A stretch of 64,000 nucleotides of DNA, from NCBI RefSeq assembly GCF_001194135.2, contig NC_068990.1, positions 84,840,687-84,904,686 of the forward strand. The letters run 5' to 3'. The position numbers and the translations under genes were made by a program. This DNA is from Octopus bimaculoides (taxonomy: Eukaryota). The notes beneath the pieces were generated by a model that was not told the origin of the DNA, made no database searches, and saw nothing but the letters and a program-made list of their open reading frames with translations. The number at the start of each line of letters is the position of its first letter. The first letter of the stretch is position 1. Shown here in pieces: positions 339 through 62,491 of the stretch.

Positions 339-35529
<35,191 letters not shown>

Positions 35530-37930: not shown

Positions 37931-38559
37931 GATTTAATGTTTCTATAATGCATCTGAGATGTCAAATCAATCATAATAAAGGCTGAAGTTTTCCTCACAA
38001 AGGATTGATTAGCCATCGGAAAGAATTGATAATAGCCAAAGTAAATTAAATTGATCGATGACTGTGTAGACATTGGTTGGACTTCCCCACAACAACATTA
38101 ATAATTTTGGCATGTTTTAAAACCAATATTGTGAGATTTCATTTATGAAACAAATCCATTAAGTATTATGTCTGTTCAAAAGCATTCAAAGATGAAATTA
38201 TGTTCGTTAAATCGCAAGAAAATTAAGAACAACGTAACTTTTAAAGAGTATTACTTATTTACAAACCTGATAATAAAAGATTCGACAAATGTTATGTTGT
38301 ATAAATCCTGTATAACCTCTGATTGAAATGATAGTCCTATGTTCCAGCCATTAAAAGCGTTCGAACTTTCGAAGGCGTTCTATGCTGTCTTTTTCAGACA
38401 TAACATTAAAAGGAGATTGGAGAAGCATGTTACGATGGAAGGCCAAAAGAACGACCATTCCTTAGGTGCTTCAATGTCTCTCGGTACATCTCGAGGGGAA
38501 CAATATCGTTCGGAAAGGGCTGAAAAGTCATTGTAATTTCCAGCCAATAGCTGAGGAAA

Positions 38560-40770
38560 GGAGTAGAACTACATTGCACATGTTCTGGAATATTGATCTG
38601 TTTCTAGCCTACATTTATCTCCTGTTCTTTGGGTCAAACTATTTAGGCTCACCAAGCCCAACGTTGACCTCCGCCCCATAGCAGTTGGTTGTACTTTGCG
38701 ACGGCTCACAGCAAAAGTGTGTCTGTCCTTAGTTTCTAACTGCCTGACTGAGGAATTTTCACCTATTCAGCTAGGAATGGGTACAAAGCTAGGTTGTGAG
38801 GCTACTGCTCATGCCATCAGGGCTTTCACCAACTTGCCCTCTTAGTCCCCAAAGGTCATCCTCTAACTTGACCTTAACAATGATTTTAACTCCATCAGTT
38901 GAGACGTCATCCTCCGCGCAGTAAGGGAGAATTCCCCACCACTTTATCACTTTGTTTGGCAAGCCTATTGGGAGCCCTCCTACCTCTCGTTTGGTGAACA
39001 CCTCATCCCATCTGCTTCTGGCGTCCAACAGAGTGATCCACTTGGTCCTGCCCTATTTGCACTGGGTTCTGAGGATGTTGCCAAGATGGGAACCGACCTA
39101 GACCTAAATGTCTGGTAACTCGATGATGCTTGTTTGGGAGGCCCTCCTGACAAGGTGCTTGCAACTGCGAAGACGATGAACGAGGAACTTAGTCGTAGAG
39201 GTCTTAGCATCAACAGCTCCAAATACGAGCTCTGGCTCCTCAGTCAACCAGCTTCGAATGAGCAGACGACTAAACTACTTGTTGACTCCCTCCCCTCAGT
39301 CACGATTCCTCCTTCATCAGCATGGTTCTCCCTTGGAGCCCAAACTACTGACCCAGCTTTCGAATCCATCTTTAGATCCAAAATGGCTAACCTCGAATAA
39401 CTTTTTAAAAACTTTGAAGTAATTGAGCCCCAACAAGGTCTTTTTTTATACTTAAGAATTACTTGTCAATTCCTAACCTATTGTATTTTCTGAGAGTTAG
39501 TTCCTCTTACAGATTCCTGTCGTCCCACCAATACTGTGACTACCCAATCTTCATTGCTTGGTCAATGTCAAAGTTTCCCCAGACGTCCGCGACCAAGCTG
39601 CTTTGCCCAACCGGTTTGGGGGTTTAGGTCTGCGCAAGTGCTCGTCTTTATCTCTTCCCTGTCACCCATTTCACACCCGATAAAGACGGTATACATTCGC
39701 AAAAGTTGACCACATTGTTATCTTGAAAATAACATGTTAGTGCAAGTATAAATTTATTGATTAACATCTGTCACACACAGCCACTGGCGAAACCTGTCAC
39801 TTGAAGCAAATTGTGACTGCAAACTGACCACCCGCCAGTATTTCAGTTATGGACTCAGTCATTTTGTAACACATGTGAATGACGTTAACAAATATAATTA
39901 TCAAGATGTTAAATTTAAAATTGATTTTAAACAGTATTTGAATTTTTTTCTTTGAATTTACGAAGAAAATATTTTAAAATATTAACAAATATAACTCATT
40001 TTTTGTATTTTATGAACTTAGTAATTCTTTTCTTACCTCCATCCACTCTTATTTCCCTTCCGTACTATCAACTAGTTCTGACGGGAGATGGATGAATCTT
40101 TGCTACAGCAGAGAGAACTGGGTTTGTCAGTTCCTGATACAGTTGAAGATAGACAGAAGCAGAGAGTTGGAACAATATGTGCTCAGGTGCTACTTTTAAC
40201 TCTCTCTTTGATCAATCTGTTCGTTTTTAAAGGTATCGTCTACTTATTGCAAGTATGAAATTCTCGGGGTACTGTACTGATACCCTACCTATGATCAATA
40301 TTGGTGGTCTGCTCAGTCTGGATGAGCTCCGCATCTCCATTGAACTCCATTAAGTGGGTGACTGAAATGTCGACGTAGTGGAACCGTCGACTCCATAGGC
40401 CTTCATGATTTGTCTTGCAACCTAAATGCTTAGTCGTTTCGCTCGTCACACCTAGTTAAACTTCATCATTAAGTGGGTCCTGGCTTGGGTTAATATTCCC
40501 TCAATTCTGGAGCTGGCGGGGTTAACCAGACATGAAAGGAAGAGACCAGATGGTCTTACTCTTTGTCTCTGTGTAAGAGGTAGTTGCCTCATTTGGGACG
40601 CCACAGTCTGTGACTCATTTGCTCTATCTGACATCCTGGATGCTGCGGTAAATGGAAGAATCACTGCTTCCGTAGCCGAACGGAACAAAATCCTCTGGTA
40701 TCGGGACTTGTCAGTGAACCATTTTTTTAATTGGCAGCCCAATCTGTCAACCATGGTAAGACTACATAGC
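38560..40770 (+). mobile_element. Decayed CRE-clade non-LTR retrotransposon (RT plus restriction-like endonuclease)
   Basis: Conceptual translation LRPIAVGCTLRRLTAK, QLGMGTKLGCEA, SGVQQSDPLGP, W*LDD, LPNRFGGLGLR, then ELRISI, RH, KRPDG, IWDAT; many stops and frameshifts; ~360-bp unrelated insert at ~39662-40025. Confidence 0.85.
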
Positions 40771-43354
40771 ATGAAAGATCGTTGGTGCAGTTTCTCCTTC
40801 GTTATTTCTGTTGCGTTTGTACGATAGTAACCAAAAGTAAACTACAGAGTGAACATTTTCTGTTCTTCAGAATTTAGTTTCGTAACCTCAGCAATCTCGC
40901 GCTTAAGTAAGACCTCTTTCCATATCAATCCTGGCAACTAGGGACACTAAATACAAGCATATTCTTATTAAGGGAGTATGTCCCAAAATGAGTTCCTTGA
41001 AATTTAAAAAAGATTTTTTAGGGTTCTGGGAAATAAGGTGTCTTTTAATGAAAAAAAATCACAGAATATTGTATCGTCATTGTCTACAAGTCATTTGTAA
41101 TGACTTAAATATGTTTAATTACCTCAACTATATATAGATTTATTAATTAATGATTTAATTTACAAGAGTAACGGGATATTAACATACTATTTAAATGGAA
41201 AGTGAGATTTCTCCAATTACTTTTTCTTAACCAAAACTGTATCTGCTTTCCTGTAACTTTTTCCTACTTAAAATTGATGCTGTTTTCTAGTCACCGAAAA
41301 ATAATATCCAATTTATATTATATTTTATAGATATGATTAATAGATCTCAAAGAAATTGGCGAAAAGGAATACCCATGAAAGAATATCGCTAAAATCTTTG
41401 GACAAAGCATGCATCTTACACCTTCCTTCCACCACTGTAAATTCAATACTTTCAGCCTACGTCAGAAAGAAATCAATATCTCTAAATATAGATTCTTAAC
41501 CAATTTTATCCAGTAATGTTTCTAAATATAGAAACACAAGTCCAAAATGGATAACCGTTAGTTTTATTTCATGGATATTGTGAGTGCATGTGTTTATGTG
41601 TAATTTTTTAATGTTAACGTGTTTGATTCTGTTTTAATATGTAGTTTATAGAATTTCACATGCCACTATCTTGGTGTTTGTATATGTGGATGTATATCTA
41701 CGTTTGTGTGTAATTCTTTGGGTTCATGTGCTTTGTCTGTGAGTGCGGCCTGTGATCTGTGTAATCATATGTACCAGTCTTATGTGTTAGTGTAACGTTC
41801 ATTACTTTACAGTGTCATCCATTTATGGCCTCCTAAAGTTTGTTCACAAACAATCCTCCTCACAGTTTTACTGCAAAATTAGAAACGTTTTCCGTAACAC
41901 ATTGCTCTTCCAAATCCTTCGTAGTTTAACATATGACAAATCACTAAGTGCACTGGACATACGTGGACACTCCCACGTGCGTAACAATGGTGGCCATAAT
42001 GGTAAAATTTGTGTAGTACAATGTAACTCATAAGAGTGATGGTCAAGCTCATCAATTGCAAGCATGTTGCGCTAGCTAGTTGGCGCACCGTTTCAAAAGT
42101 CCATTTTCTTTTCGGACAGACCATTCGTGTGTTTTCGTATTTTACTTTCAAATATTCCTTTGTTTCGCGACCACACTTCTTACAAAAGCATCTTTCCCTA
42201 CCTTGTTTTTGCTATTCCGTGTGCTTTACCATGGTTTCTATGGCTGGATGCCCTTCCTAATGCCAACCACTCCAAGAGTGTAGTGGATGCTTTTTACATG
42301 CCACTGACATTGGTCACGACTATGATCTCACTTGGCTTGACGGGTCTTCTCAAGCTGCTGACATCATCATCAACATCATCATTGTTTAACGTCCGTTTTC
42401 CATGCTGGCATGGGTAGGATGGTTTGACTGAGGTCTGGGGAGTCAGTGGCTGCACCAGGCTCCAATCTGATCTGGCAATGTTTCTACAGCTGGATGCTCT
42501 TCCTAATGCTAACCACTCTGAGAGTGTGGTGGGTGCTTGTTACGTGCCACCAGCACAGGAGCCAGTCAAACGGGCCTGGCATCGATCATGTTTGGATAGT
42601 GCTTTTTACGTGCTACTGGTATGGAAGCCAGTCAAGGGGTACTGGCATCAGCCATGTTCAGATGGTGCTTTTTATGTGCCACTGGCACAGGGGCCAGTCG
42701 GGCGGTCCTGGCATCAATCGTATTTGGATAGTGCTTTTTACATGCCACCAGCACAAGAACCAGTCAGGGGGTACTCGCATCAGCTACGTTCGGATAGTGC
42801 ATGGCAGATTTTCAGTACTGTTGAAGGAAATGAGTTTGTCATATACCCAGATATTGTTTAGGTCTTTTTCATGGAAGTAGAGTTTATTTGACACAAGGTG
42901 TATAGTTAGCTTATATCTATGTGCAAAATGTTTTTGAGAAGCAATGGATATCATCAATTCAAGGATTAATTACTATATTAAACAACAAATGAACACCATA
43001 ATAGATAAGAAAGCTAATCTACAGTCTTCATATTACTAATTGGTGATATTAAAATACATAAAATGCAGTTATTCTTTTAATTTAAAATGAAGACTATAGA
43101 TTAGAGCAGTGGTTTTAAATCTTTTTGATTTTGTGGTACATTGGGATTCAGATAAATCTGTTTTCACATTGTAAGTTTAAAAAGAAAAGTTTTAATTGAA
43201 AGATTTTATTTAGCCTGTTTCATTAATTCTCTTGATACCAACCCACTTGAGGATGCCCTAGTTTCATCCATCCATTGGTCCCTCTTCTCCACCCACTATT
43301 TCTAGCAATATCATGTCAGGATATCACTGAGGGTTCCTTAAAATGGTCGTTCAA

Positions 43355-47442: not shown

Positions 47443-47577
47443 TCAAACTGGGGACATTGGGTTTTTATAATTTGTCCTCGCTTGAATAGCGGTTAATCTA
47501 TCAAGCTCATCCTTCCATTTCTTTTCCTCAAGTTTCCATTTCTCTAACTCAGCACCAATAACCATTAGTCGCAGCAT
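47443..47577 (-). CDS. Terminal coding exon: MLRLMVIGAELEKWKLEEKKWKDELDRLTAIQARTNYKNPMSPV*
   Basis: GACTACAG acceptor, phase 0, charged helical/coiled-coil tail, TGA at 47445-47443. Confidence 0.85.
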   Translation of the reverse strand: MLRLMVIGAELEKWKLEEKKWKDELDRLTAIQARTNYKNPMSPV

Positions 47578-50500
47578 CTGTAGTCGAGTTTAACAATAAA
47601 TCAAATTTACATGAAGCTTCAATATTGTTTTAAGTTTATTCAAGATTTAAACTTTAACATGCAAAACCTACATCAAATAAACAACGAAATGAAATTCAAA
47701 TAGGAATCACACTTGCGTTTTTGCACAATTCTCTCTCATGTGTAGATAGATTCCCTCATCTCCCTGCAGACATTAACTTACAGCTGTTTAAGCTGAATTT
47801 AAACCACGTCATCCCACTAGGACTAGTAAATGTCATAGCTACAGCTCTTTCTTATGATTAAGTCATAAAATAAATTTCAGTTGACTAGCAACTGTTACTG
47901 TGGTCAAAGAGGATGAATAATTGTTTCTTGTTTCAAACAAAAGTGTTTTAATAGAACTGAAATATTGACAGTTTCTGTTACCTAGGTGAATAAATTTCTA
48001 TGGAGGAAAATGTTATGAAAGCATAATAGTCAGAGTGGAAAAAAATCACGGAGTTATTACTTCTGGTTTCAAAGGGCAGATTGTGTGGTGCTTGTGTACA
48101 AAGTACAATGTTGTATGGAAGCGAAACATGGGCACTGAATATAGAGGATGTATGAATGCTGGAAAGAAACTGGGTGAGTAATTTCCTTTCCTTTACTCCC
48201 CATGATTGTAAATCAGTGAACAACCTGAAGTAGGATGTATTCCGACAGGCTCACTTGCCCACAACACTGTATGAAGAAGAATGTCTTTTAATGGTCGTCC
48301 AATAACCCAGTAACCAATTTGTTATTATATTTTTGTTGAAATACACTGCCTTTGTTTGAATGAATTTTTAAAAATAATAAACGACCGTGAGGTTGTGAGT
48401 TTGAATCTTGGACCGGGCTGCGTGTTGTGTTCTTGAGCAAAACACTTATTTCATGTTGTTCCAGTTCACTCAGCTGTAGAAATGGCGTGGAGAGGGGAGG
48501 CTGGTATGCATGGGCGACTGCTGGTCTCCCATAAACAACCTTGCCTGGACTTGTGCCTCGGAGGGGAACTTTCTAGGTGCAAACCCATGGTCAGTCATGA
48601 CCGAAGGGGGTCTCAGCAGCTCAGTAGCTATTGTTACTACATTAGACTTTGCTTTTCTAAATTTGCCAACTTTGTACAACCCTCATCCAAACCTACATGA
48701 TGCAGTTGCCTCCCATCAACTTGTTTCACTGAATTTCAACCTCATAGATTTTGTATTCAATACCTTCTCAATCCTTTCTATTTAAAATGGGTCTGGAATT
48801 TTCATACCTTCTCCATGTCTCCCTATAAAACACCAACTATAGCAGCTCAAGCTGAACATTAATTACATGACCCCACTAATTTATCCCTTTCTCTCAGTCT
48901 AGATGCACCAAATTCTTAGATTTATCATGAATCGAGTTTCAATTGAATAGATGCTGTAACTCACCTCAGCTCCAACAAGCTGGGTTTCACCATTGTGCCG
49001 AAAATAACTCTTGCCTTTAAAAGAATAGAAACTTTCCTGTGCAAACGTGGAGATTTCTGTCATAAAAGAAAAATAACAATTCTATGGTTATTACATTTGA
49101 AAGCTGGTAGCAAATGATGCAAACTTTTAGGAGTATTAACCTTAACTTAGGAGTTGAGACAACTTTTCAATATTCATATAACATTGTCATGGCCGATGCC
49201 AGTACTAACTGACTGGCACTTATACCGGTGGCACATAAGCACCATTTGAGGTGGTTGATGCTAGTGCTACCTGACTGGTCCTGTGCTGGTGGCATGTAAA
49301 AAGCACCATTTCAGCGTAGTCGTTACCAGTGCCGCCTGACTGGCTCCTGTGATGGTGGCATGTAAAAAGCACCATTCAGGTGTGGTTGAAGCCAGTACCA
49401 CCTGACTGACCCTCATGCCGGTGGCACATAAAAAGCACCCACTACACTCTTGGAGTGGTTGGCATTAGGAAGGGCATCCAGCTGTAGAAACCTCGCCACA
49501 TCAGACTGGAGCATGGAAAGGGATGTGAAATGATGATGATGATTTTGAACTTGGAATGTTATCAGCATTTAAAGCCTATATTCCATACTGGCATGGGTTG
49601 GATGTTTTGACAGGAGCTGGTATGTCAGAGAGCTGCACCAGGCTTCAACTGTCTGTTTTGGTGTCGTTTCTACAGCTGGATGCTTTTTCTAATGCCAACC
49701 ACTTTACAAAATGTACTGCATGCTTTTTATGTGGCATTGGTATGGGAGCTTTTTACATTGTACAAGCATAAGTGCTTTATACATGAAACCAGCACAGGTG
49801 TTTCTTAAGTGACGTCAGCACACGTAAGGCAATTTGTCAGATGCTCAAAAAATTCTAACAATCCACTGAACCAAATAATTACCTGTTTGAGAACTCTCAA
49901 GAGCAAAAACAACTTCCCACTACATTCATATTCTATCCAGAGAGAGAGAGAGAGAAATATATATCACTCAATTGCTTAATGCAGAGAGAAGTTCATTATA
50001 CAGCTCACATCCTCTCCTAATGAGCCAATGTGAGCCAATATGCAACCATTTGATCTGTTAGAAGTAGCAGACAAATTCCCTCAGATCACATCCCATTTCT
50101 TTAAAAAAGGAAGGCCACATTGAACAATGAAGTCCCAGAAATACAAACAAACAGGATGGTCACAGTTGGAATGTTTTTGACCACTGAGAAGATCAAAGGT
50201 TTACTCAATCAGAACTGACTCCAGACAAAACAACAAGTCATCAACTTCTACACAAGAAACCTCTAAGATGAAGATAACCCAATCACATAAGAATCTGTAG
50301 TGGTGACAGATCATTCTCAAATGAGGATAAATCAACTGTCTCTCTTCTCAATGCTCTGGACTGTCACAACTTTTCAGAGAGGATTGTCATGGTTGAAATG
50401 CATTTGATTATAGGTCTGGTGGTTCAAAGTTGACCTGGTGTTAAAACAACATCAACAAGTGTCAAATCAATGAAGGAACCTATATTCAGTCGCTTGATGC

Positions 50501-53500
50501 ACTAGAAGTAGCAACTAGTTTCCCTACATTACAACTTAATATAGATAATATAGTATGAAGTACATTACGGCTAAAAAGGGGAAAAACTGACTGGAATATT
50601 TTTATTATTGGTCAGATCATTCAGGATTACCTTGAGTGTATAAACAACAACAACAGCAGCAGCAACAATATACATACGTACCAATAATATGCAAATCTGA
50701 AGACATTTTCTTAGCATTAAGAACTGGTTTGAAGTCTACAGTTATATTTGATATGATCAAAGGTTTTATCATCTGAGTGAATATCTGATCACAGTGTAGG
50801 CGAAATTTGTCTTTTTCTTCTCTAGATAAATGCACACCAACAACTTTATAAGCATCACTGATTCCAAAATACAATGTACAATTTCTTCCTGTAAGGAATA
50901 TACACAAACACACACACATATATATATATATCAGAAAAGCATTGTGGTACAGAACTAAAATAACAAGACAAAGAAGACGGAGAGTTTCATACAATGCAAA
51001 AAGGGAAGAGTTTAGTAACCTTTATATATTTCGGGCACAAAGGCCCATCATCAGAAGTAAAACGGAGTCAAGAAATGTGAGTCTATACAAATCTTGCTCG
51101 TTGTTTGTTGTGCTACACAACAATCAACATGTATAGACTCATTACCTCCGCCTTAGCAAAGGTGGAAGTATTGTTTGTTTGTATGTGGACAAGATATCTC
51201 AAGAACCGCCAGATGGATTCAGATGCAACTTTCAAGGATATTTGACCTCGTGACTGGCACGAACTGATTAGATTTTGGGATCAATCCAGTACCAGACAAG
51301 GATTCTGGATTATTTTTCCTGTTTTTTTTTTTTTTACTTAATTTTTGAGAGCGGTCGGGTTCATTTTTAGTATTCTCGTTTGTGAGAGCAGTTGAGTTTA
51401 TTTCAGATATTCTCATTTTAAAAATCATCTCTGGTTAATTGTTGAGAGGACATTGGTGTTGCCTTGGTGGAGGTTTGTGCTCTCTGAGTGCTCTTGTCGG
51501 CTCGTAAAATACACCATTTTGAGCGTGGCCGTTGCCAGTACTGCCTGACTGGCCTTCGTGCCGGTGGCACGTAAAAGCACCCACTACACTCTCGGAGTGG
51601 TTGGTGTTAGGAAGGGCATCCAGCTGTAGAAACTCTGCCAAATCAGATTGGAGCCTGGTGTAGCCATCTGGTTCACCAGTCCTCAGTCAAATCGTCCAAC
51701 CCATGCTAGCATGGAAAGCGGACATTAAACGATGATGATGATGATGATGATGTTAAATGGTGATGATGATGATGAAGACGGTACATGTAAACACACATAC
51801 ACAAATTTGTTTAGAAAGAGGGAGAGGAGAGATAGAGTTGTGGGGAGGATAAGAGAAAAAAAGAAAAGAAGAAATAAACAAACGTAAAAGCTTACGAGAA
51901 TTTAACATTCCACAGACAGTTTGACCTACTTCATTCATCCAATTTGTTTTGTTTGCTCGTAGAATTGCATGAGTTGTATCTTCGATGAAAGGCACTTCAG
52001 CACCTGGAATTGTGATGAAAATTATTACAAGACATGCATTGATACAAGAACACATAAATATATAAGACAGCAGGAATGGGGCAATTTACTGAAATGATGT
52101 TCAGCACATGCTTTGTATTTATCTAATTAACCACCACAAAAAAAAAAAAAGGCAACCCAGTAAATGGTTAGTATTCATTTAACCAATCACAGAAGACTGA
52201 AAGTCAATCAGTGAATGCCTGATGTTTATTTAATGAGCTATGGGAAAAATGAAAGTAAAGACTGACCTTGGCAGTTTTTCAACTCAGAGTGCCTTGAGAC
52301 ATTAGTAAATGCTAAAAGTCATTTAGCCATTATGTCTGCTATTTATGCTGTTCTGCCATCCTTTGAATCATCATCATCATCATCATCATTTAACGTCCGC
52401 TTTCCATGCTAGCATGGGTTGGATGATTTGACTGAGGACTGGTGAACCAGATGGCTACACCAGGCTCCAATCTGATCTGGCAGAGTTTCTACAGCTGGAT
52501 GCCCTTCTTAACGCCAACCACTCAGAGAGTGTAGTGGGTGCTTTTACGTGCCACCGGCACGAAGGTCAGTCAGGCGGTACTGGCAACGGCCACGCTCAAA
52601 ATGGTGTGTTCTATGTGCCATCCGCACAAGAGCCAGTCCAGGGGCACTGGCAACGATCTCGCTTGAAAATCCTTAAACATGTCACGGGCACAAGTGCCAG
52701 AAAGGCGATGCTGGGCACAGGTGCTATCCCGATTTCGCTTTTACTTGCCCCAATAAGTCTTCAACAAATATAAAAAGACATTGTGTCTTTTACTTGAAAT
52801 ACAGTTAAATAGAGTATAGCTGGAAAATAGCCATAAACAAAGGGGTACAGTTGACTGAAATGATTTTTTTTTTGTGCCTTAGTTCCATTTTTATCAGGTC
52901 TCCCTTTCTTCTGTTTATCCTCTTGGTCATGTTGCCTTGAATGAATAGAGACAACGTAGAGTAGTGAAGACTCTTTAGTACTGCAGAGTGCAAGACAACC
53001 TTATTAGAGCTGGTGCTATGATAAAATGCATCTGGTACACTGAGTAAAATGGTTTGAGAATGAATGGAAACAATGCAAGATCAAGAGAACATGAAAGTTT
53101 CTATCGTGATGGTGTCATGATACAATGCAGCCAATGCACTCTGTATCGAGTTCGGTGTCAGGAAGGGTGTGCAACCATAGAAACCTTACCAAAAATGGAA
53201 TGTATGAGATGTAAACTTCGAATTCTTCTAGGTGAATAGTAACCCTCAATAAGAACCAACATGGACCAAGATAACCTGTCCAACCCATCCTGACAAGTAA
53301 AATATAAATTAATGATGATGATGATGATGATGATGAATGTGCTTTAAATCCTAATCCTCATAAAATACAATTTCTTTGATAAATTGGAAGATGTGGTGTA
53401 GTCACTATCGCCATTCCAACTTCTAGGAATAGCTGGGTAGATGTGATGGTGTGGTTAGATATTCAGTCTGAGCTTCCACAGAATGTTATTTTGGGGAATG

Positions 53501-55480
53501 AATAACACAGAGAAGGTAGTGCAAGAGAGATGACTCTCTGAGGAGAGAACTGCCTTTCTTGGTAATTCCCACATCTTTCTTCCATACAACCAATGACCAG
53601 CAATTATTCAGATGGAACACTAACATTGACTTCAGTGTCTTCATCTAGTTTTCTCTTAGTCTGAGAAGATCTAAAAAAGGTTGTGGATATTTTTTTCCAC
53701 TTCCCCTAATTAGCAATTAAAGCAAAAACAGGAAAAAAATTTATCATTTGGACAAAACATGGTGTAATTGGATGAGTGACTGATATGCTGAAATTTTAGA
53801 CTACAAATCAACGAGTCAGAAGTTCAAATCTTGGTATAAGTACTGTATTGTGAACTCTAATCCACTCTTGACTAGACATAACTCTAGTTGTCCTAAATAG
53901 ACATGGTTATAAAACACAAATATGTAAATATGTACGACTTAAATGACACGTGTGATAAATATGAGTGATGAGATGTATTTGCATGTAAAAGATCAGATAC
54001 CCACAATTCATACTAATGTCGAAATTGTCCATGAAAAACAATACAGGCAAAGAAACTATATAAAAGCAGACAATATACAGAAAAAAATGTATTAAATATA
54101 TAAAATGTGCACATACCATATTGATAACATCCATCCTGTAGTTTAAAAGGCTTCTCCCTTAAATCATATCTGTCTTAATAAAAATAAAAACAATAATAAT
54201 TGGAGCATTGGGCATGATAAAAAACAAACAAAAGCTATACCTGGATCCTCAACACTACACACTATCCAAAAAATAGCCCTGCTAGGAACAGCCCACAGTC
54301 TACATAAGACACTATCAATTCAATAGTATAACCTAAACAAAACAGGTCACAAACACAAGCCACACTCTATACCGCAATTACCCAGTGAAATAAACTTCCA
54401 CCAGCAAGTTAGATAACCAATGCATTGCACACTTAACACACAATACAAGCAGTAATACAACAAAAGACTGCAGCACACCTCAAGAGAAAAAAACAAACAG
54501 CAACTTAAAGGGATGAAAAGCTAACCCATCTTCAATTTGTCATAGATGGATACAGCACAGTGCTGATAAGAAAAATCAAAACCACTGGTTCCTAAGCTGG
54601 TTATCCATTACTCTACAGACTAAGTTATGTGTGGTTCTTTAAGAAGTTGTTGATAAAAACAAGCCAATTATAAATTACTTGATTTCTTCAGAGAGTTTGT
54701 ACATTTCATTTCAGGGTCTTCACCACAGCCATCCTACAAGGAACAGACATGAAAACCAGGCTATAACAAATAACAAATAACAAATAGGTAGTTGATATAA
54801 AATGGTAAGAATATTTAGCTTGAAATCATCATCATCATTACATCATGATTAAATGTCTGGATTCCATGCTGGCATAGGTTGGACATTTTGGCAGAATCTG
54901 AGAAGTTGGAGGACTGCATCATGCTCTAATAGCTACTTTGGCATGGTTTCTTCAATTGGATGTCCTTCCTAACACCAACGACTTTTCAGAGTATACTGGG
55001 TGCAGTTTTTGTGAAGATCACTTCATAACTTACAAGGCTAAGGGCCTAAAGTGACCCCTATAACTGAGAGAGAATTGAAGTGAGATGGTTCTAAGTAGGG
55101 GATGAGGGAGGAAAGTAAGTTGAGAGGAACAAATTTAAGTTACTATTGGATGGTGGCGGAGAGGGTTTAAATATAAGTACTAGGTTTGATTTGATTGACT
55201 AAGTCCATCAAAGCGGAGCCTCATCATGGCCAGTCTAAGGACGGAAACAAATAAGAAGGTAAAAAGAGAAAGATGGTAGATTTGAAGGTCCTAAAAATAA
55301 AAGGGATTCATGCTGGTGGCACGTAAAAGCACCCACTACACTCTCAGAGTGGTTGGTGTTAGGAAGGGCATCCAGCTGTAGAAACTCTGCCAAATCAGAT
55401 TGGAGCCTGGTGTAGCCACCTGGTTCACCAGTCCTCAGTCAAATCGTCCAACCCATGCTAGCATGGAAAGCGGACGTTAA

Positions 55481-55511
<31 letters not shown>

Positions 55512-58500
55512 CTTTGTAAAACTTTGAACATGAATTAAACTTTGTATCCGCTCATATAAAAAAAGGTGAAGTCAACCCCAGAAGGATTCAAACTGAAAAT
55601 CATAAAAATCATATTTCACATATCGAGCCTTCCTTTATTTGTAACACTTTCATAGGCCATTAGGATGAAAAAGGTAGACAAAGTATAACTTACGTATAGT
55701 CTAAAATCAGCTAAATTTTCTTCCACAGTTTTTAATGCAGGAAGATAAGTTTTGGTATACTGATGTCTGAAAATATATAATAGGATAGCTCTATATTTTA
55801 TATTTCTGTTGACAGTTGATGACGAAACAAATATAAGTACAAGTTTTCAAGGCATATATCAGTTCTCTGTAACAGAAAGAATCAATTCTGTGAGAGCCGA
55901 TCAGAAATAGTTAATTTAGTGGGAGGTGGTGGCGGGGGGAGGCAAATAGGGAAGGGACTGAATGTAATAGTGTGCCAGTGCTGTAATAGTATGTGAGCTG
56001 AGTTACCAAGTCATCACTGCCCAATCACCATCCTCAGTATAGCAAGAAACCATGATGGAGATGACAGAAAGAAGAGGCAGTAGCAGTTGTAGCAAGCTTA
56101 CATCACTGAGGTTGACTTTGGTTTTCATCATTTCATGATCAATACATCGTTAACCTGTTCGCCCTCCAAAATATGAAGGTATTTTTTATGTTAGTGGTCA
56201 TTCTTCGGCTTCCTCTTCTCTTTGCATGTATCTGGGACAATTATTTAGTGATTGACATCATTAACAATTTCATATAAAAACTTCTATTCAACTCTCTCTA
56301 CTGACTTGACAGGCTTGGCTGTGTGTCTAAGAAGTTCACTTTTCAGCCCTATGGTTTTCAAGTTTAATCCAAAGTGCAGCACATTGCACAAGTGTCTTCT
56401 TAAAAAACAATAGAAAATAAAAATATACAAAAAAAAACTTTAAAAACTGTACAATCATAAAGTGATTGATGAAACAAAGTATATTTACACTTTTTCTTTT
56501 TGTATATTTTGACTAGAGTCCGTTTTCTTCAAGTATATCAAATGCTTCACCACATGTTGTATGAATGGTCTACAAAGCATAGAAGCTGGGCACAAATAAA
56601 GAAGTCTGGCAATCATCTTCGTGCCTTCAGAATGGAAAGAAAGAAATAGAAACTTCAGTCAAGAAATGGCTTAAAACTCACATAATAAATGTTCTTGTAG
56701 TTTTTAACTGGTTTCAGTCATTGAACTTAGGATCATCTGCAAGTGTTTAGTCAATTACACAGACCTTCGTTCATTAACGTGCAAGTGGCTGAGCACTCCA
56801 CAGACACGTGTACCCTTAATGTAGTTCTCGGGGATATTCAGCGTGACACAGTGTGACAAGGCTGACCCTTTGAATTACAGGCACAACAGAAACAGGAAGT
56901 AAGAGTGAGAGAAAGTTGTGGTGAAAGAGTACAGCAGGGTTCGCCACCATCCCCTGCCGGAGCCTCGTGGAGCTTTAGGTGTTTTCGCTCAATAAACACT
57001 CACAACACCCAGTCTGGGAATCCAAACCGCGAGTCCGCTGCCCTAACCACTGGGCCATTGTGCCTCCACCATACATATAATAGTCTCTGTCAAAATGAGA
57101 TGATTGTGCCCTTTCCGTTTGTTTTTAGGACAGTAGGGGGTAATTTAAGGAATATCTGCTGTTGTGTGCAGCAGAATAGGGAACCATATAGAAGCTACCT
57201 TCCCTCATCATCATCATCCTTTTTCAAAGTTTGTTTTCAATACTTGCATGGGTTGGACAGTTTGATAGGAACTAGCAAGCCAAAGAACTGCACCAATTCT
57301 CTTTGTCTGCTTTGGCATTGTTTCTATGGCTGGATGCCCTTCTTAATGCCAACCACCTTACAAAGTGTACTGGGTACTTTTTACATGGCATCAGCACTGG
57401 TAGGGTCAACAAGTAGCTTGCAAGACAAAGATTCCTTGACTGGAAGGGGGAGTTGTATTGAGGGAGGTGGCTTTGTACCAAATTTCATTCATAGTCCACG
57501 TATACATTGACACTGTATTGTCAATGTATATTGTTAATGTATTAGTATAGAGAAGCAGTTGCCAGTAGCAAATGATGAAAATGACAATGCATGTATACAC
57601 ATGCACATAACAAAATGAACTAATGAGGGAGCCTCTATGAGGTTGCTTGATCAGCTAGAAATAGCAACCAAATATCACTGCTTGAAAAAAGGGAGGATGC
57701 ACTGTGCAATGTAGTCCCTAGTAGAACAAGAAAAAGAGGGGACGATCATACCTTGAACACTTTTGATGACAGGTCTCGTCAGTGCTGACTTGGAGCTTAA
57801 CCATCACAACACAGACAGAATTTGCTGAGACAGATATTCTATGAATGGAGGCCCTTCTTGTCACTAATCTCACATGTTTCTAAACAAGATAATAGTTCCC
57901 TTTGGCCGGACATGTTTTCACGGAAGACTGGAAACAAAATATCTCACTTGTATGATGTGACACTCACAGCTATCACATGATGTCAAGACAAGGAGAGAAA
58001 AACACACACACACACACATTTTAGGCTTCTTTTAGTTTCCATTTAAAGTATCCACCCACTAGGCTTGGGTCAGCCTGGGGCTACAGTAGAAGACACTTGC
58101 CAAGGTGCCAAGCAGTGGCAACGAACCTAAAACCATGAGGTTGGGAAGCAAAACTCTTAACCATACAAAATGGTTTAGAAAAGTAAGACAAATAAAATAG
58201 AATGAAGCAAAATTAAAATTAAATATAATTACCTCCAAGTATATAGAAGTGTTTCTTGATACTTTTGTTTTTGAAAATAGCATTGCTCAAATAGAGCATA
58301 CAATATTTTAGTAAACTGTCCACCTTATTGCCAAAGTGGAGTTTGTTTTCCAAATATTCATTGCAAATCTCTAAAAATAAGACGACAATAAACTTAGTGC
58401 AACTTCTGACATCAGGAATTTGTAAATAGCAAGTTTGTATGTAATCAAATACAGTTACCATTAGTAATTGACTGTTTTTCATACACTGTGCCATCAAGAC

Positions 58501-60596
58501 ACACACAGTAATAAGACAAAATAAACACTAGTATCTTGTAAACACTATGTCAACAGACACAACACTGAAACAAAATAACAATCAGCAATTGTCTCATTGT
58601 TTCTGAAACACTATGTTATCAAATTCTTACCTTAATCAAATTGTTAGGTAAACATTGACATTGTATTGTCAATGTATATTGTTAATGCTAATATGGAGAA
58701 TCAATTGCAAATAGTAAACGATGAAAATGACAATGAACGTATACACATGCACATAACAAACTGAACTAATGAGGGAGCCTCTATGAGGTTGCTTGATCAC
58801 CTAGAAATAGCAATCAAATATCTATCAAATCATTGCTTGAAAAAAGGGAGGGTACATTGTGCAATGTAGTCCCCCAGTACAACAAGCACCCATTACACTC
58901 TTGGAGTGGTTGGTATTAGGAAGGGCATCCAGCTTTAGAAAACCACGCCAAATCAGACTGGAGTCTGATGCGGCCTTCCAATTTACTAGCCCTGGTCAAA
59001 CTGTCCAACCCATGCAAGCATGGACAATGGACATATAATGATGATGATGATGATGAAGTTAAAAGGAAACAACACAAATCTACTTACCAATTATAAACTT
59101 TAAAATGTCGGCATTATTTATTACACTGTGTTTGATTAAGTTAGTCTCCAAACAAAAATTACTGAAAATTTTGAGAACATCAATCTTCACAAGTTGAGAT
59201 GAAGCTTTTGCAGTTTTTAAAAGAATTTCACTTCCCGAAAGTTTATCAAACAATAAACCTAGTATAAGAAAAAAAATTAATTATAATTTAAAAAAAAAAT
59301 GTAAGTAAAAATAAATAAATAAATAAATAGGCGCAGAAGTGGCTGTGTGGTAAGTAGCTTGCTTACCAACCACATGGTTCCGGAAATGCTAATAAAATGT
59401 CACTGCCTACAGTTCAGTGATTTTTAAGGCAAGTGCAAATGTAAACATTCACAAAGACAAACAAAAATGACAAGATTAGTACAGTTTCTGTCTACCAAAT
59501 CACTCATTTTGGTCTGGCCTCTCATGTCTACCCTACAATGTCATTCTAAAAACAAACAATTACACTATCAAAATCTTGAAGCTACAACATAATTCAGAGT
59601 AATCTGAATGCTAAAGGGTTAATTCTTGCATCAAACCTATTTACATTAGTTTTCCATCAGTAAGTGCAGGTGCAACTGTGTGGTAAGAAATTTGCTTTCC
59701 GACCACATGGCCTTGGGTTTGGATCTATTGTGTACCACCTAAGGTAAGTATCTTGTACTATCGACCTAGGTTGATCGAAATTTGAGTAGATATGATAGAC
59801 AGAAACTGAAAGAAGCCTGTTGTATACATGCGAATATATAGACATGTATATGTGTGTGAATGTGTGTGCATGTTACTGTCTTTTTGCCTTAACTTCTTGT
59901 GATTGTCGTAAACAAATGTCACCACCATGCAAACAGCGTCTGTTGTTTCCAATTTTCCATTAAAACTTGTTTGGTCATGGTGGATATTACTTTGTTTAGA
60001 AACAGGTAGGAGTTGGTGACAAGAAGGGCATCTGACTGAAGAAAATCTACCTCAACGAATTCTGTCTGTCTCATGCAAAAATGGAAAAGTGGATGCTAAA
60101 TGATGATGATGATAATTTCATTTAAATTGTGTAACTTACATAGATCAGGATCAAACCAGGTGAAATTGCACAAGCAGCTCACTGCAAATTTGTTGGTATA
60201 GTCAGATTCATTCCTTTTAAGAGCCGAAAAGAGATGGTGAACAAAACTTTGATTAGCAGAAATTGCAGAACAGATTTTTGGCACAGTCGATAAATGGTAG
60301 AGAACACTTAGAGAAGCCATTGACAGGAGAGGAAACAGATGGCCATTGTGTTCTTCCAAATTGTCCAAAACTGATTCTATTTTTAATAGAATGCCATGTT
60401 TCATAAACAACGTTTTAATATCAGAACTTTGGTCAGCTATGAAAATTCTGTTAATGAAGTCCAAAATGGCTATTTCATTGACAATATTTTCTTCATTGCA
60501 TGTCATATCCTCATTAAACTGGTCAATCAAATTCTTCACAACAACATCATTTATTTCTGATGGTAATGGTGCCCCCTTCAGAAGCAAATAAGCCAT
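47443..60596 (-). CDS. ARM/HEAT-like repeat plus C-terminal Schlafen/AlbA_2-domain protein, ~542 aa, 11 coding exons
   Basis: Exons sum to 1629 nt (543 codons including TGA) with compatible phases throughout. The C-terminus YQYGAEVPFIEDTTH...VCGMLNSRRNCTLYFGISDAYKVVGVHLSREEKDKFRL...KPVLN...IIEIS...SYFRHNGET follows the AlbA_2 (PF04326) pattern. The N-terminus is Leu-rich with ARM-like helix motifs (AVSCLCNF, LSVLYHLS, LKIFSNF). One junction (54173) needs an AAG acceptor. Confidence 0.8.
48965..49056 (-). CDS. Schlafen/AlbA_2 domain exon 3: ISTFAQESFYSFKGKSYFRHNGETQLVGAE
   Basis: TTTATGACAG / GAG|GTGAGT, 92 nt; Y-x-R-x-x-G-x-T motif. Confidence 0.9.
50682..50888 (-). CDS. Schlafen/AlbA_2 domain exon 2: RNCTLYFGISDAYKVVGV...MSSDLHII(E)
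   Basis: TCCTTACAG / TTG|GTACGT, 207 nt; TLYFGISD..VVGV matches 'G.L.iGv.Ddg.v.Gv'. Confidence 0.92.
51020..51057 (-). ncRNA. Minimal hammerhead ribozyme core in an intron of the Schlafen-domain gene
   Basis: CUU-CUGAUGA-U-GGGC(CUUUGU)GCCC-GAAA-UAUAU-A-AAG: 3-bp stem I, 4-bp stem II, palindromic AUAUAU stem III. Confidence 0.7.
51141..51440 (+). mobile_element. Helentron/HINE (DINE-1-like) non-autonomous element
   Basis: Starts ATTACCTCCGCC-TTAGCAA-AGGTGGAAG (hairpin), then GTTT repeats and GGACAAGATATCTCAAGAAC...GATTTTGGGATC; family recognised from memory. Confidence 0.5.
51896..52003 (-). CDS. Schlafen/AlbA_2 domain exon 1: AEVPFIEDTTHAILRANKTNWMNEVGQTVCGMLNS(R)
   Basis: AATTCCAG / CTC|GTAAGC, 108 nt; VCGMLNS matches the AlbA_2 'vcAfaNs' motif. 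Confidence 0.9.
54117..54173 (-). CDS. ARM-Schlafen exon: (N)RYDLREKPFKLQDGCYQY(G)
   Basis: Donor ATG|GTATGT; joins in frame to give YQYGAEVPF. Acceptor ambiguous (AAG at 54174 versus CAG at 54170). Confidence 0.7.
54679..54733 (-). CDS. ARM-Schlafen linker exon: DGCGEDPEMKCTNSLKKS
   Basis: TTCCTTGTAG / CAA|GTAATT, 55 nt, phase 0 to 1; no homology support. Confidence 0.6.
55694..55766 (-). CDS. ARM-Schlafen exon: HQYTKTYLPALKTVEENLADFRLY
   Basis: ATTTTCAG / TAC|GTAAGT, 73 nt, phase 2 to 0. Confidence 0.8.
56489..56624 (-). CDS. ARM-Schlafen exon: (G)TKMIARLLYLCPASML...SSQNIQKEK(V)
   Basis: Pyrimidine tract plus AAG acceptor, donor GT|GTAAAT, 136 nt; only this frame is open. Confidence 0.75.
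56770..57068 (-). mobile_element. SINE family C, partial
   Basis: Matches the other C copies. Confidence 0.9.
58233..58370 (-). CDS. ARM-Schlafen exon: (E)ICNEYLENKLHFG...KKHFYILG
   Basis: Acceptor TCTTATTTTTAG, donor GAG|GTAATT, 138 nt, phase 1-1. Confidence 0.85.
59088..59258 (-). CDS. ARM-Schlafen exon: (C)LLFDKLSGSEILLKTAK...NNADILKFII
   Basis: TATACTAG / TTG|GTAAGT, 171 nt, phase 1-1, open. Confidence 0.88.
60140..60596 (-). CDS. ARM-Schlafen gene, first coding exon (MAYLLLKGAP...NFTWFDPDL)
   Basis: Acceptor TCTCTTACAG at 60610, ATG in strong context (AAC ATG G) after an in-frame TGA, 152 open codons, donor T|GTAAGT. Confidence 0.88.
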
Positions 60597-61225: not shown

Positions 61226-62491
61226 TTCATATTCGTTTTCTACCCCCCCCCCCCTTTTTTTTGTTTTTCTTGTTTTCGTGACCGGAACTTAAACTGTATA
61301 TTGACCAAAATTGGTATTTCTTTGCTTGAAATTTTTCACAAATAACTTTCAGACGATGTAGATTATGTTTATATCGAAATTCAGAGTGGTCAAAAAATAA
61401 ATAAATAAATAAAAAAGGTGGGCACGCAAAAGTAAATGAAACTTGAAATTTTGATAAAAATTTGTGACGTGTGTCAGTATGCGTGTGCATGCANNNNNNN
61501 NNNNNNNNNNNNNNNNNNNNNNNNNNNNNNNNNNNNNNNNNNNNNNNNNNNNNNNNNNNNNNNNNNNNNNNNNNNNNNNNNNNNNNNNNNNNNNNNNNNN
61601 NNNNNNNNNNNNNNNNNNNNNNNNNNNNNNNNNNNNNNNNNNNNNNNNNNNNNNNNNNNNNNNNNNNNNNNNNNNNNNNNNNNNNNNNNNNNNNNNNNNN
61701 NNNNNNNNNNNNNNNNNNNNNNNNNNNNNNNNNNNNNNNNNNNNNNNNNNNNNNNNNNNNNNNNNNNNNNNNNNNNNNNNNNNNNNNNNNNNNNNNNNNN
61801 NNNNNNNNNNNNNNNNNNNNNNNNNNACACTGCGCGAAATGCTGATCGGGATTTCATCTGTTTTTTTATGTTCTGAGTTCAAATTCCGCCGGGGTCGACT
61901 TTGCTTTTCATCTTTTCGGGGTCGATAAATTAAGTACCAGTTACGCACTGGAGTCGATGTAATCGACTTAATCCCTTTGTTTGTCCTTGTTTGTCCCCTC
62001 TATGTTTATCCCCTTGTGGGAAATAAAGAAATAAGAAATGTTAGCACGTTGCGCGAAATGCTTAGCAGTATTTCATCTGTCTTTACGTTCTGAGTTCAAA
62101 TTACGCCGGGGTCGACTTTGCCTTTCATCCTTTCGGGGTCGATAAATTAAGAACTAGTTGAGTACTGACCCCCCACCCAGAAATTTCGGGCCTTGTGCCT
62201 AGAGTAGAGAACAATTTACTGAGAAATTTGGTTGTAATTTTTAGAAGGTCTGTCGTGAGGTAAGACAATAAAAGTTATTCAGTTAATGAAATATACCAAA
62301 TAATAAGTTTCTGGCATAGGGACAAGACCAATAATTTGAAGGAAAGGGGTTAGGTGCCTCGAAGTTATTTGGAAACCAACGAAACAGACTCCACATGGTT
62401 GGTATTCGGCCATGCTCGTTATGAAGCGTGGAGAAAATGTAATCATATTGTAATGTCGAGGAGAAAGACGCATTAGATAATGCTATAGATG

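Follow-up and report, generated by a model that had tools for sequence, protein, structure and literature searches.

In human SLFN11, residues E209 and E214 hold the metal ion, tRNA cleavage is abolished by each of the substitutions E209A, E214A and K216A singly, and D252A slightly raises the activity, so that D252 is non-essential (PMC9482658). SLFN5 and mouse SLFN2, in which one of these three essential residues is gone, are nuclease-deficient (PMC9482658). The E184A, E196A, E218A and D241A variants of SAMD9 still bind tRNA and do not cleave it (PMC10246899), and tRNA binding by SAMD9 needs K198, K214 and R221 (PMC12331169). The C. elegans protein TOFU-1, a subunit of PUCH, has a single SLFN fold with no recognisable catalytic residues and is part of an active complex (PMC10567574). 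Here we describe a Schlafen-fold protein encoded by the gene LOC106871329 in a window of 64,000 nucleotides (nt) from Octopus bimaculoides (contig NC_068990.1, positions 84,840,687 to 84,904,686; all coordinates below are positions within this whole stretch). The protein has one domain of the Pfam family SLFN_AlbA_2 (PF04326, below AlbA_2) with a degenerate nuclease motif. We regard it as probable that this domain is a non-catalytic Schlafen-fold module on an armadillo-repeat (ARM) scaffold, kept by selection for binding and not for cutting.

A single Schlafen fold joined to armadillo repeats

The assignment of the AlbA_2 domain is not a chance match. The product of the locus, the 496-amino-acid (aa) protein XP_014773208.1, is annotated as 'uncharacterized protein LOC106871329 isoform X2'; it shares 99% identity with the spliced sequence of the window and matched PF04326 with an E-value of 8.6e-11 (42.9 bits, cut-off 25.3). 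The match covers positions 19-115 of the 118 profile positions in octopus, and canonical outgroups align from position 1; the two-exon fragment alone matched with an E-value of 1.4e-8. This was the single AlbA_2 match in the octopus protein (496-542 aa), in which no other Pfam domain was detected. Homologues were retrieved with HMMER, run exhaustively against 1.8 billion representative proteins, and a family profile was built from 39 family domains (alignment A1). This profile matched the active-site lobe of SLFN11, SLFN13, SLFN14, SLFN5 and SLFN12 with E-values from 6.6e-13, obtained for pig SLFN11 (7fex), to 5e-9; rat SLFN13 was among the matches, and SAMD9 matched more weakly. Only with the family profile did the search reach the SLFN structures and bring the motif into register; a single-sequence search of the PDB returned just SAMD9, with a marginal E-value of 0.015. 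With a word-indexed homologue search, the two-exon peptide gave no matches and exon 1 gave only one 910-nt contig.

The predicted structure of the domain (AlphaFold, AF2; predicted local distance difference test score, pLDDT, 90.4) had its best PDB matches in the rabbit and human SAMD9 tRNase domains, with template-modelling (TM) scores of 0.65-0.70 and a root-mean-square deviation of about 3.5 A. SLFN13, SLFN5, SLFN11, SLFN12 and SLFN14 ranked after SAMD9 in the same Foldseek comparison, and the probability was 1.00 for SAMD9 and for each of these. The full-length model (pLDDT 76) consists of a helical solenoid (residues 1-285), a disordered linker (288-356), the AlbA_2 domain (about 357-496) and a C-terminal helix of about 40 residues (497-536), and by Foldseek the solenoid resembles designed and natural armadillo-repeat proteins. 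The protein thus has one Schlafen lobe, the remainder being ARM solenoid, linker and long helix, with no two-lobe core. SLFN11 and SLFN13 had been suggested as modelling templates by a first-pass annotation of the window; the fold does match both, but the single-lobe tRNase domain of SAMD9 is closer. Octopod AlbA_2 domains are mildly basic (isoelectric point 8.5-9.3), a property whose family-wide spread is uninformative.

Comparisons with described systems showed that the likeness is greatest to the tRNase domain of SAMD9 and SAMD9L (7ksp, 9o0d), which was both the closest structure (Foldseek E-value about 1e-8) and the best single-sequence PDB match. Both proteins have a single AlbA_2 lobe, and the pattern C-x-x-L/M-N-S-R-x-N-x-T-x-x-F-G is common to both. 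SAMD9 family proteins are built as SAM, AlbA_2, SIR2, P-loop NTPase, TPR and OB domains in this order. The octopus protein lacks the SAM, SIR2, P-loop, TPR and OB domains and has the ARM domain instead. The catalytic Schlafens SLFN11, SLFN12, SLFN13 and SLFN14 belong to the same superfamily and carry their motif in register with that of the octopus domain; they form a two-lobe horseshoe, whereas the octopus protein has one lobe and no SWADL or helicase region.

Loss of the nuclease residues

The motif F-I-E-D-T-T-H-A-I-L, reported by the first-pass annotation as a degenerate Schlafen active site, lies in a GT-AG exon of 108 nt at 52003..51896 on the minus strand (acceptor ttccag before GT, donor C before gtaagc). 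The interval given for it coincides exactly with the exon boundaries, and the exon product, (G)AEVPFIEDTTHAILRANKTNWMNEVGQTVCGMLNS(R), contains the peptide VPFIEDTTHAIL. By tblastn mapping and a unique GT-AG splice solution, this is exon 8 of the 11 coding exons of LOC106871329. The codon map assigns the motif to residues 368-377 of isoform X1, and exon 9 carries the peptide on with RNCTLYFGISDAYKVVGV, so that the GISD sequence is encoded one exon downstream of the motif.

In the profile alignment, the family consensus 'feedethelk' falls on 'FPESQSIEFK' of SLFN11. This alignment and alignment A1 give the equivalences E370 to E209, A375 to E214 and L377 to K216. The first Glu is therefore present in O. 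bimaculoides, the second metal-binding Glu is replaced by Ala and the essential Lys by Leu. The octopus GISD corresponds to the G-x-x-D of canonical members (G-I-D-D, G-V-S-D), which equates D410 with D252; this equivalence rests on alignment A1 and the SLFN11 sequence, and the HMMER alignment places the Asp in an insert. The equivalences proposed earlier (first Glu and Asp kept, Glu to Ala, Lys to Leu) are thus right for O. bimaculoides. An ungapped extension that would place SAMD9 E196 on E365 was rejected, since the loop between strand 1 and helix 1 is variable in length and E365 is Gln in O. vulgaris.

Of the three residues essential in SLFN11, two are missing in O. bimaculoides and all three in the O. 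vulgaris orthologue. Canonical nuclease activity of the octopus domain is very unlikely, because E214A or K216A alone abolishes cleavage by SLFN11; we infer its absence from the SLFN11 and SAMD9 mutagenesis. The earlier proposal that canonical chemistry is lost is supported, and its inclusion of D252 in the nuclease centre needs qualifying, as the D252A variant of SLFN11 is slightly more active and D252 is non-essential (PMC9482658). Relative to SAMD9, which needs E184, E196, E218 and D241 for catalysis, the octopus protein has equivalents of E218 (E387) and D241 (D410) and an Ala at E196, and the equivalent of E184 is not alignable.

Dead Schlafen folds are already known from SLFN5, mouse SLFN2 and TOFU-1, and a pseudo-enzyme state is in itself unsurprising. 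SLFN5 and mouse SLFN2 likewise keep the fold while having lost one or more essential residues, the Lys being replaced in SLFN5 (ESTHVEFV); they are two-lobe vertebrate Schlafens, whereas the loss in octopus is more extensive and occurs in another domain architecture. Mouse SLFN2 shields tRNA from cleavage. The PUCH proteins TOFU-1, SLFL-3 and SLFL-4 share with octopus the single SLFN fold, the likeness being at the level of the fold, and differ in domain context from the octopus protein with its ARM domain and possibly coiled-coil helix.

Drift at the active site among cephalopod orthologues and purifying selection on the Octopus gene

Full-length orthologues were found in O. vulgaris (CAI9728745; FIKDTTHAIL and GISN), in Argonauta hians (FVRDSTHEIL and GISD) and in the source of P0003 (FVSDSTHAIM and GINYN). 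P0003 is a cephalopod-like protein of 534 aa, 38% identical to octopus, that is encoded on intronless, transcript-like contigs of 2.3 kb from sequencing-run assemblies; from this identity, our guess is that it comes from a squid or cuttlefish. Listed in the order O. bimaculoides, O. vulgaris, Argonauta and P0003, the residues are E, K, R and S at the position of E209, A, A, E and A at that of E214, L, L, L and M at that of K216, and D, N, D and N at that of D252. Across the four cephalopod sequences, all four catalytic positions vary, and because of this the 'kept half' of O. bimaculoides (E370 and D410) reads in the alignment as incidental to one species. The description of the motif as half-lost is true of O. 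bimaculoides but understates the loss, as E370 is Lys and D410 is Asn in O. vulgaris. When orthologues were aligned, as had been suggested, the Ala substitution was conserved in three of the four sequences, Argonauta having Glu, and the Lys was absent from all four.

At the two codons that differ, O. bimaculoides has G (GAA and GAT at 51981-51983 and 50854-50856) where O. vulgaris has A (AAA and AAT), giving the E/K and D/N differences. A-to-I RNA editing is frequent in octopus. It could in principle recode both O. vulgaris sites to Glu and Asp, and these may equally be ordinary transitions. Editing was rejected as a rescue of the lost residues, since GCA (Ala) and CTA (Leu) cannot reach Glu or Lys by A-to-G changes.

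The O. vulgaris locus (L001) is collinear with the window, with introns that are 88-93% identical, in line with a synonymous divergence (dS) of 0.11. Nei-Gojobori estimates between O. bimaculoides and O. vulgaris gave a ratio of non-synonymous to synonymous divergence (dN/dS) of 0.32 for the whole gene (540 codons, with 33 synonymous and 44 non-synonymous differences; Fisher p=3e-6). The ratio was 0.27 for the AlbA_2 region (p=0.003), 0.39 for the ARM region (p=0.005) and 0.12 for exon 9, where counts are small. Residues C393, N397, G407, G416, D425, R428, D432 and P441 do not vary among 22 full-length members of the family (alignment A2). LOC106871329 is under purifying selection and is maintained.

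Descent from a bilaterian ARM-Tudor-ARM-AlbA_2 family

The searches returned 53 significant relatives, some of them proteins of 750-1000 aa, from bivalves, gastropods, a chiton, amphioxus, a hemichordate and ticks. All named members retrieved were annotated as 'uncharacterized' or 'hypothetical', and no description of the ARM-Tudor-Schlafen architecture, or of the gene and protein accessions, was found in the searchable literature. Pfam identified ARM, Tudor and C-terminal AlbA_2 domains in the relatives. Segments 13-121, 133-350 and 354-528 of the cephalopod profile are collinear with the relatives and flank their Tudor domain; the non-cephalopod proteins, such as XP_060075083 of Ylistrum, XP_019632566 of Branchiostoma and XP_005092617 of Aplysia, are collinear with octopus over both ARM blocks, the AlbA_2 domain and the C-terminal helix. 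When the cephalopod proteins, the window and the O. vulgaris locus were searched with a Tudor hidden Markov model (HMM) built from 21 relatives, no match fell below E=0.3, and thus no hidden Tudor exon was found. The alignments place the cephalopod genes as a Tudor-less derived branch of a bilaterian ARM-Tudor-ARM-AlbA_2 family, because they are collinear with the relatives and the Tudor model finds no match in them.

Active-site columns were compared between 26 non-cephalopod relatives and nine canonical AlbA_2 outgroups, which include mollusc RRM-AlbA_2 proteins. At the K216 equivalent, Lys is found in 0/26 relatives (Arg in 9/26) and in 9/9 outgroups. The E209 equivalent is Glu in 3/26 relatives and 9/9 outgroups, and the D252 equivalent is Asp in 1/26 and 8/9, respectively. 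The E214 equivalent is still Glu in 20/26 and Asp in 3/26 relatives, against Glu in all nine outgroups. As judged from the near or complete absence of Lys, first Glu and Asp in the relatives, most of the active-site degeneration is older than the cephalopods, and the Lys was already lost in the family. The D-x-T-H motif and the absence of Lys are common to octopus and these relatives, but the octopus proteins and P0003 additionally lack the last canonical Glu, which 23 of the 26 relatives keep as Glu or Asp and which Argonauta keeps as Glu.

Two distant and unrelated members from metagenome or transcriptome data, P0041 and P0036, independently show an octopus-like loss (EDETHAFM and EDERHAFI), in which the first Glu is present, the second Glu is Ala and the Lys is Met or Ile. 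A separate, canonical family was also recovered (P0018, P0029, P0054, P0030, P0028, P0038, P0047, P0052 and P0049; roughly 220-560 aa). Its proteins have an AlbA_2 domain with E-x4-E-F-K and the downstream Asp, a coiled-coil tail and, at the C-terminus, a CaaX-like box (CAIL, CAVM, CLLL or CSVM); named members come from a scallop and from limpets, and one is labelled 'RRM domain-containing protein' by one source. From their sequences, these proteins could be catalytic single-fold Schlafens and are possibly prenylated.

A non-catalytic binding module and the alternatives to it

In the explanation that we favour, the AlbA_2 domain keeps its structural core but not the metal-binding Glu and the essential Lys that Schlafen-type RNases have, and most likely binds RNA or a protein partner in place of cutting. 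The scaffold that holds this module would be the ARM domain, and the C-terminal helix may mediate oligomerisation; both the binding and the scaffold roles are inferred. In the proposed line of descent, the gene goes back to a bilaterian ARM-Tudor-ARM-AlbA_2 family whose canonical catalytic set had already eroded; the Tudor domain was then lost in cephalopods, and the last conserved Glu also in Octopus and in the lineage of the cephalopod-like P0003.

Several observations weigh against this explanation. D371 and H374, both on the motif strand, are conserved: Asp is present in 22/26 relatives and 4/9 outgroups, His in 20/26 and 3/9, and both are kept in 4/4 cephalopod sequences, so that the pair is family-specific and may be part of a variant active site. 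Other acids, namely E387, aligned with SAMD9 E218, and D425, might cluster near the old site. The tRNA-binding residues K198, K214 and R221 of SAMD9 align with L377, N383 and Q390 of octopus, and the R221 column holds Lys or Arg in 9/9 canonical outgroups and Q, Q, E and I in the four cephalopod sequences. On this alignment, SAMD9-like RNA binding is doubtful, and the ligand may be protein instead of RNA; because these residues are replaced, we have left the ligand as either. Finally, the dN/dS values are based on only 77 substitutions, and the motif exon alone gave a ratio of 0.70 from 7 changes, which is not interpretable alone.

The octopus protein could instead be the non-catalytic subunit of a composite nuclease, paired with a competent single-fold paralogue as TOFU-1 is with TOFU-2 in PUCH, in which case the dead fold would supply substrate binding or architecture. 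We consider this unlikely, although both this reading and that of an RNA-binding decoy, raised in the first-pass annotation, have precedents. The octopus domain is a single SLFN fold that lacks catalytic residues, as expected of a PUCH-like non-catalytic subunit, whereas mammalian Schlafens need two lobes, and PUCH itself assembles single folds with one partner, TOFU-1, devoid of catalytic residues (PMC10567574). Single-fold AlbA_2 proteins with the complete E/E/K/D set exist in molluscs (for example the RRM-AlbA_2 proteins P0018 of a scallop and P0029 of a limpet), and the Tudor domain of the non-cephalopod relatives hints at a germline ribonucleoprotein (RNP) setting. However, the Tudor domain is gone in octopus, the similarity to PUCH subunits concerns the fold only, and a tandem AlbA_2 copy was looked for and not found within the window, to which that search was confined.

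There is a slim chance that nuclease activity persists in the domain through a re-wired site, made of D371-x-x-H374 and other acids (E370, E387, D410 or D425). The conservation of D371 and H374 in all cephalopod sequences and most relatives would fit such a site, as would E387, whose aligned residue in SAMD9 is essential there. The state of the Asp position is little informative, as the D241 equivalent is Asn in some mammalian SAMD9L proteins and D252A does not inactivate SLFN11. Yet D371 is the sole near-motif acid that is conserved across cephalopods: position 370 is E, K, R or S, E365 is Gln in O. vulgaris, E387 is Asn in Argonauta, and position 410 alternates as D, N, D and N. The only acid conserved family-wide, Glu at position 375, is Ala in octopus, and catalysis by a Schlafen fold without the second Glu has no known precedent.

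At the level of the whole family, we put forward as a long shot a broader scenario, suggested by the Tudor domain and by PUCH, in which Schlafen folds take part in piRNA processing. The ARM-(Tudor)-ARM-AlbA_2 proteins might be conserved bilaterian RNP or germline factors that act through a re-wired D-x-x-H-E site or as the non-catalytic half of a composite nuclease, and a catalytic AlbA_2 paralogue might then have the Tudor-less, Glu-less cephalopod branch as its obligate partner or regulator.

Decay of the gene or domain, with the lost residues as early pseudogenisation, is essentially excluded from the sequence: the catalytic positions drift freely between close species, the motif exon has its high ratio and a predicted isoform (X3) lacks the domain core, but the gene has an open reading frame and canonical splice sites at 10/10 introns, O. 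vulgaris, Argonauta and the transcript-like P0003 contigs encode full-length orthologues, and dN/dS is well below 1 with invariant structural core residues.

A non-catalytic binding module thus remains the explanation that we prefer for LOC106871329. What is new is the unstudied family, in which a single Schlafen fold is combined with armadillo repeats and usually also with a Tudor domain. Full E/E/K/D outgroups, partly degenerate members and fully degenerate cephalopod proteins form a natural series, which could show what role the Schlafen fold has past RNA cutting and whether single-fold Schlafens are generally heteromeric. As an annotation of the window, the result is ordinary, with one intact gene, a right exon call and a probable pseudo-nuclease.

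Gene structure and other features of the window

The full gene model is given in Table 1. All 10 introns of isoform X1 are GT-AG, with one splice solution per junction and an open reading frame throughout. The annotated isoforms X1, X2 and X3 (XP_014773209) are 542, 496 and 473 aa long. In the annotation, isoform X2 lacks the 138-nt ARM exon 3, and the predicted isoform X3 lacks the 207-nt exon 9 with the AlbA_2 core, including GISD; the frame is kept in both. A model in which exon 1 is spliced straight to the motif exon, whose phases match, was dropped, as the annotated product has six exons between them.

Table 1 Window coordinates of the LOC106871329 coding exons, active-site codons and assembly gaps.
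Feature	Position	Strand	Remarks
LOC106871329 coding span	47443..60596	-	11 coding exons, isoform X1 mapping
Exon 1 from ATG, residues 1-153, start of armadillo-repeat region	60140..60596	-	full-length model, Foldseek
Exons 2-7, ARM remainder (to ~285) and disordered linker (288-356)	54117..59258	-	
Exon 2	59258-59088	-	
Exon 3	58370-58233	-	absent from isoform X2
Exon 4	56624-56489	-	
Exon 5	55766-55694	-	
Exon 6	54733-54679	-	
Exon 7	54173-54117	-	
Exon 8, residues 364-399, first strand and first helix of AlbA_2	51896..52003	-	degenerate E-x4-E-x-K
Motif codons F368-I-E370-D371-T-T-H374-A375-I-L377	51960..51989	-	codon map
E370 (GAA)	51983-51981	-	
A375 (GCA)	51968-51966	-	
L377 (CTA)	51962-51960	-	
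Exon 9, residues 399-467, AlbA_2 core RNCTLYFGISD...KDKFRLHCDQIF	50682..50888	-	207 nt
D410 (GAT)	50856-50854	-	
Exon 10, residues 468-498, last AlbA_2 strands (EISTFAQESFYSFKGKSYFRHNGETQLVGAE)	48965..49056	-	
Exon 11, residues 499-542 and stop, long C-terminal helix	47443..47577	-	possibly coiled coil
Assembly gap	6682-7305		run of N
Assembly gap	10759-10869		run of N
Assembly gap	14293-15090		run of N
Assembly gap	16049-16524		run of N
Assembly gap	25927-26031		run of N
Assembly gap	32477-32881		run of N
Assembly gap	61494-61826		run of N, ~900 nt upstream of LOC106871329 ATG

The window is eukaryotic DNA, rich in AT and in repeats, and has seven assembly gaps of 105-798 nt each, and a 5' untranslated exon or promoter near the last of these may be incomplete. 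Adjacent open frames on the plus strand at about 38460-39470 and 40456-40824 resemble by eye the reverse transcriptase of a non-LTR (long terminal repeat) retrotransposon, with fragments such as GVQQSDPLGPALFAL and KRPDGLTL...WDATV; Pfam gave no matches for four such fragments (38.5-40.8 kb), and their identity is unconfirmed.

An inverted pair of repeats resembling short interspersed nuclear elements (SINEs) flanks the motif exon at 51499-51751 and 52367-52619; the copies are 253 nt long, 95% complementary and 615 nt apart. The collinear alignment with O. vulgaris ends exactly at the repeat edges, 52368 and 51752, and on this alignment both copies look specific to O. bimaculoides. The pair may form a long duplex in the pre-mRNA, and such a duplex would be a possible ADAR substrate or could favour exon skipping or back-splicing.

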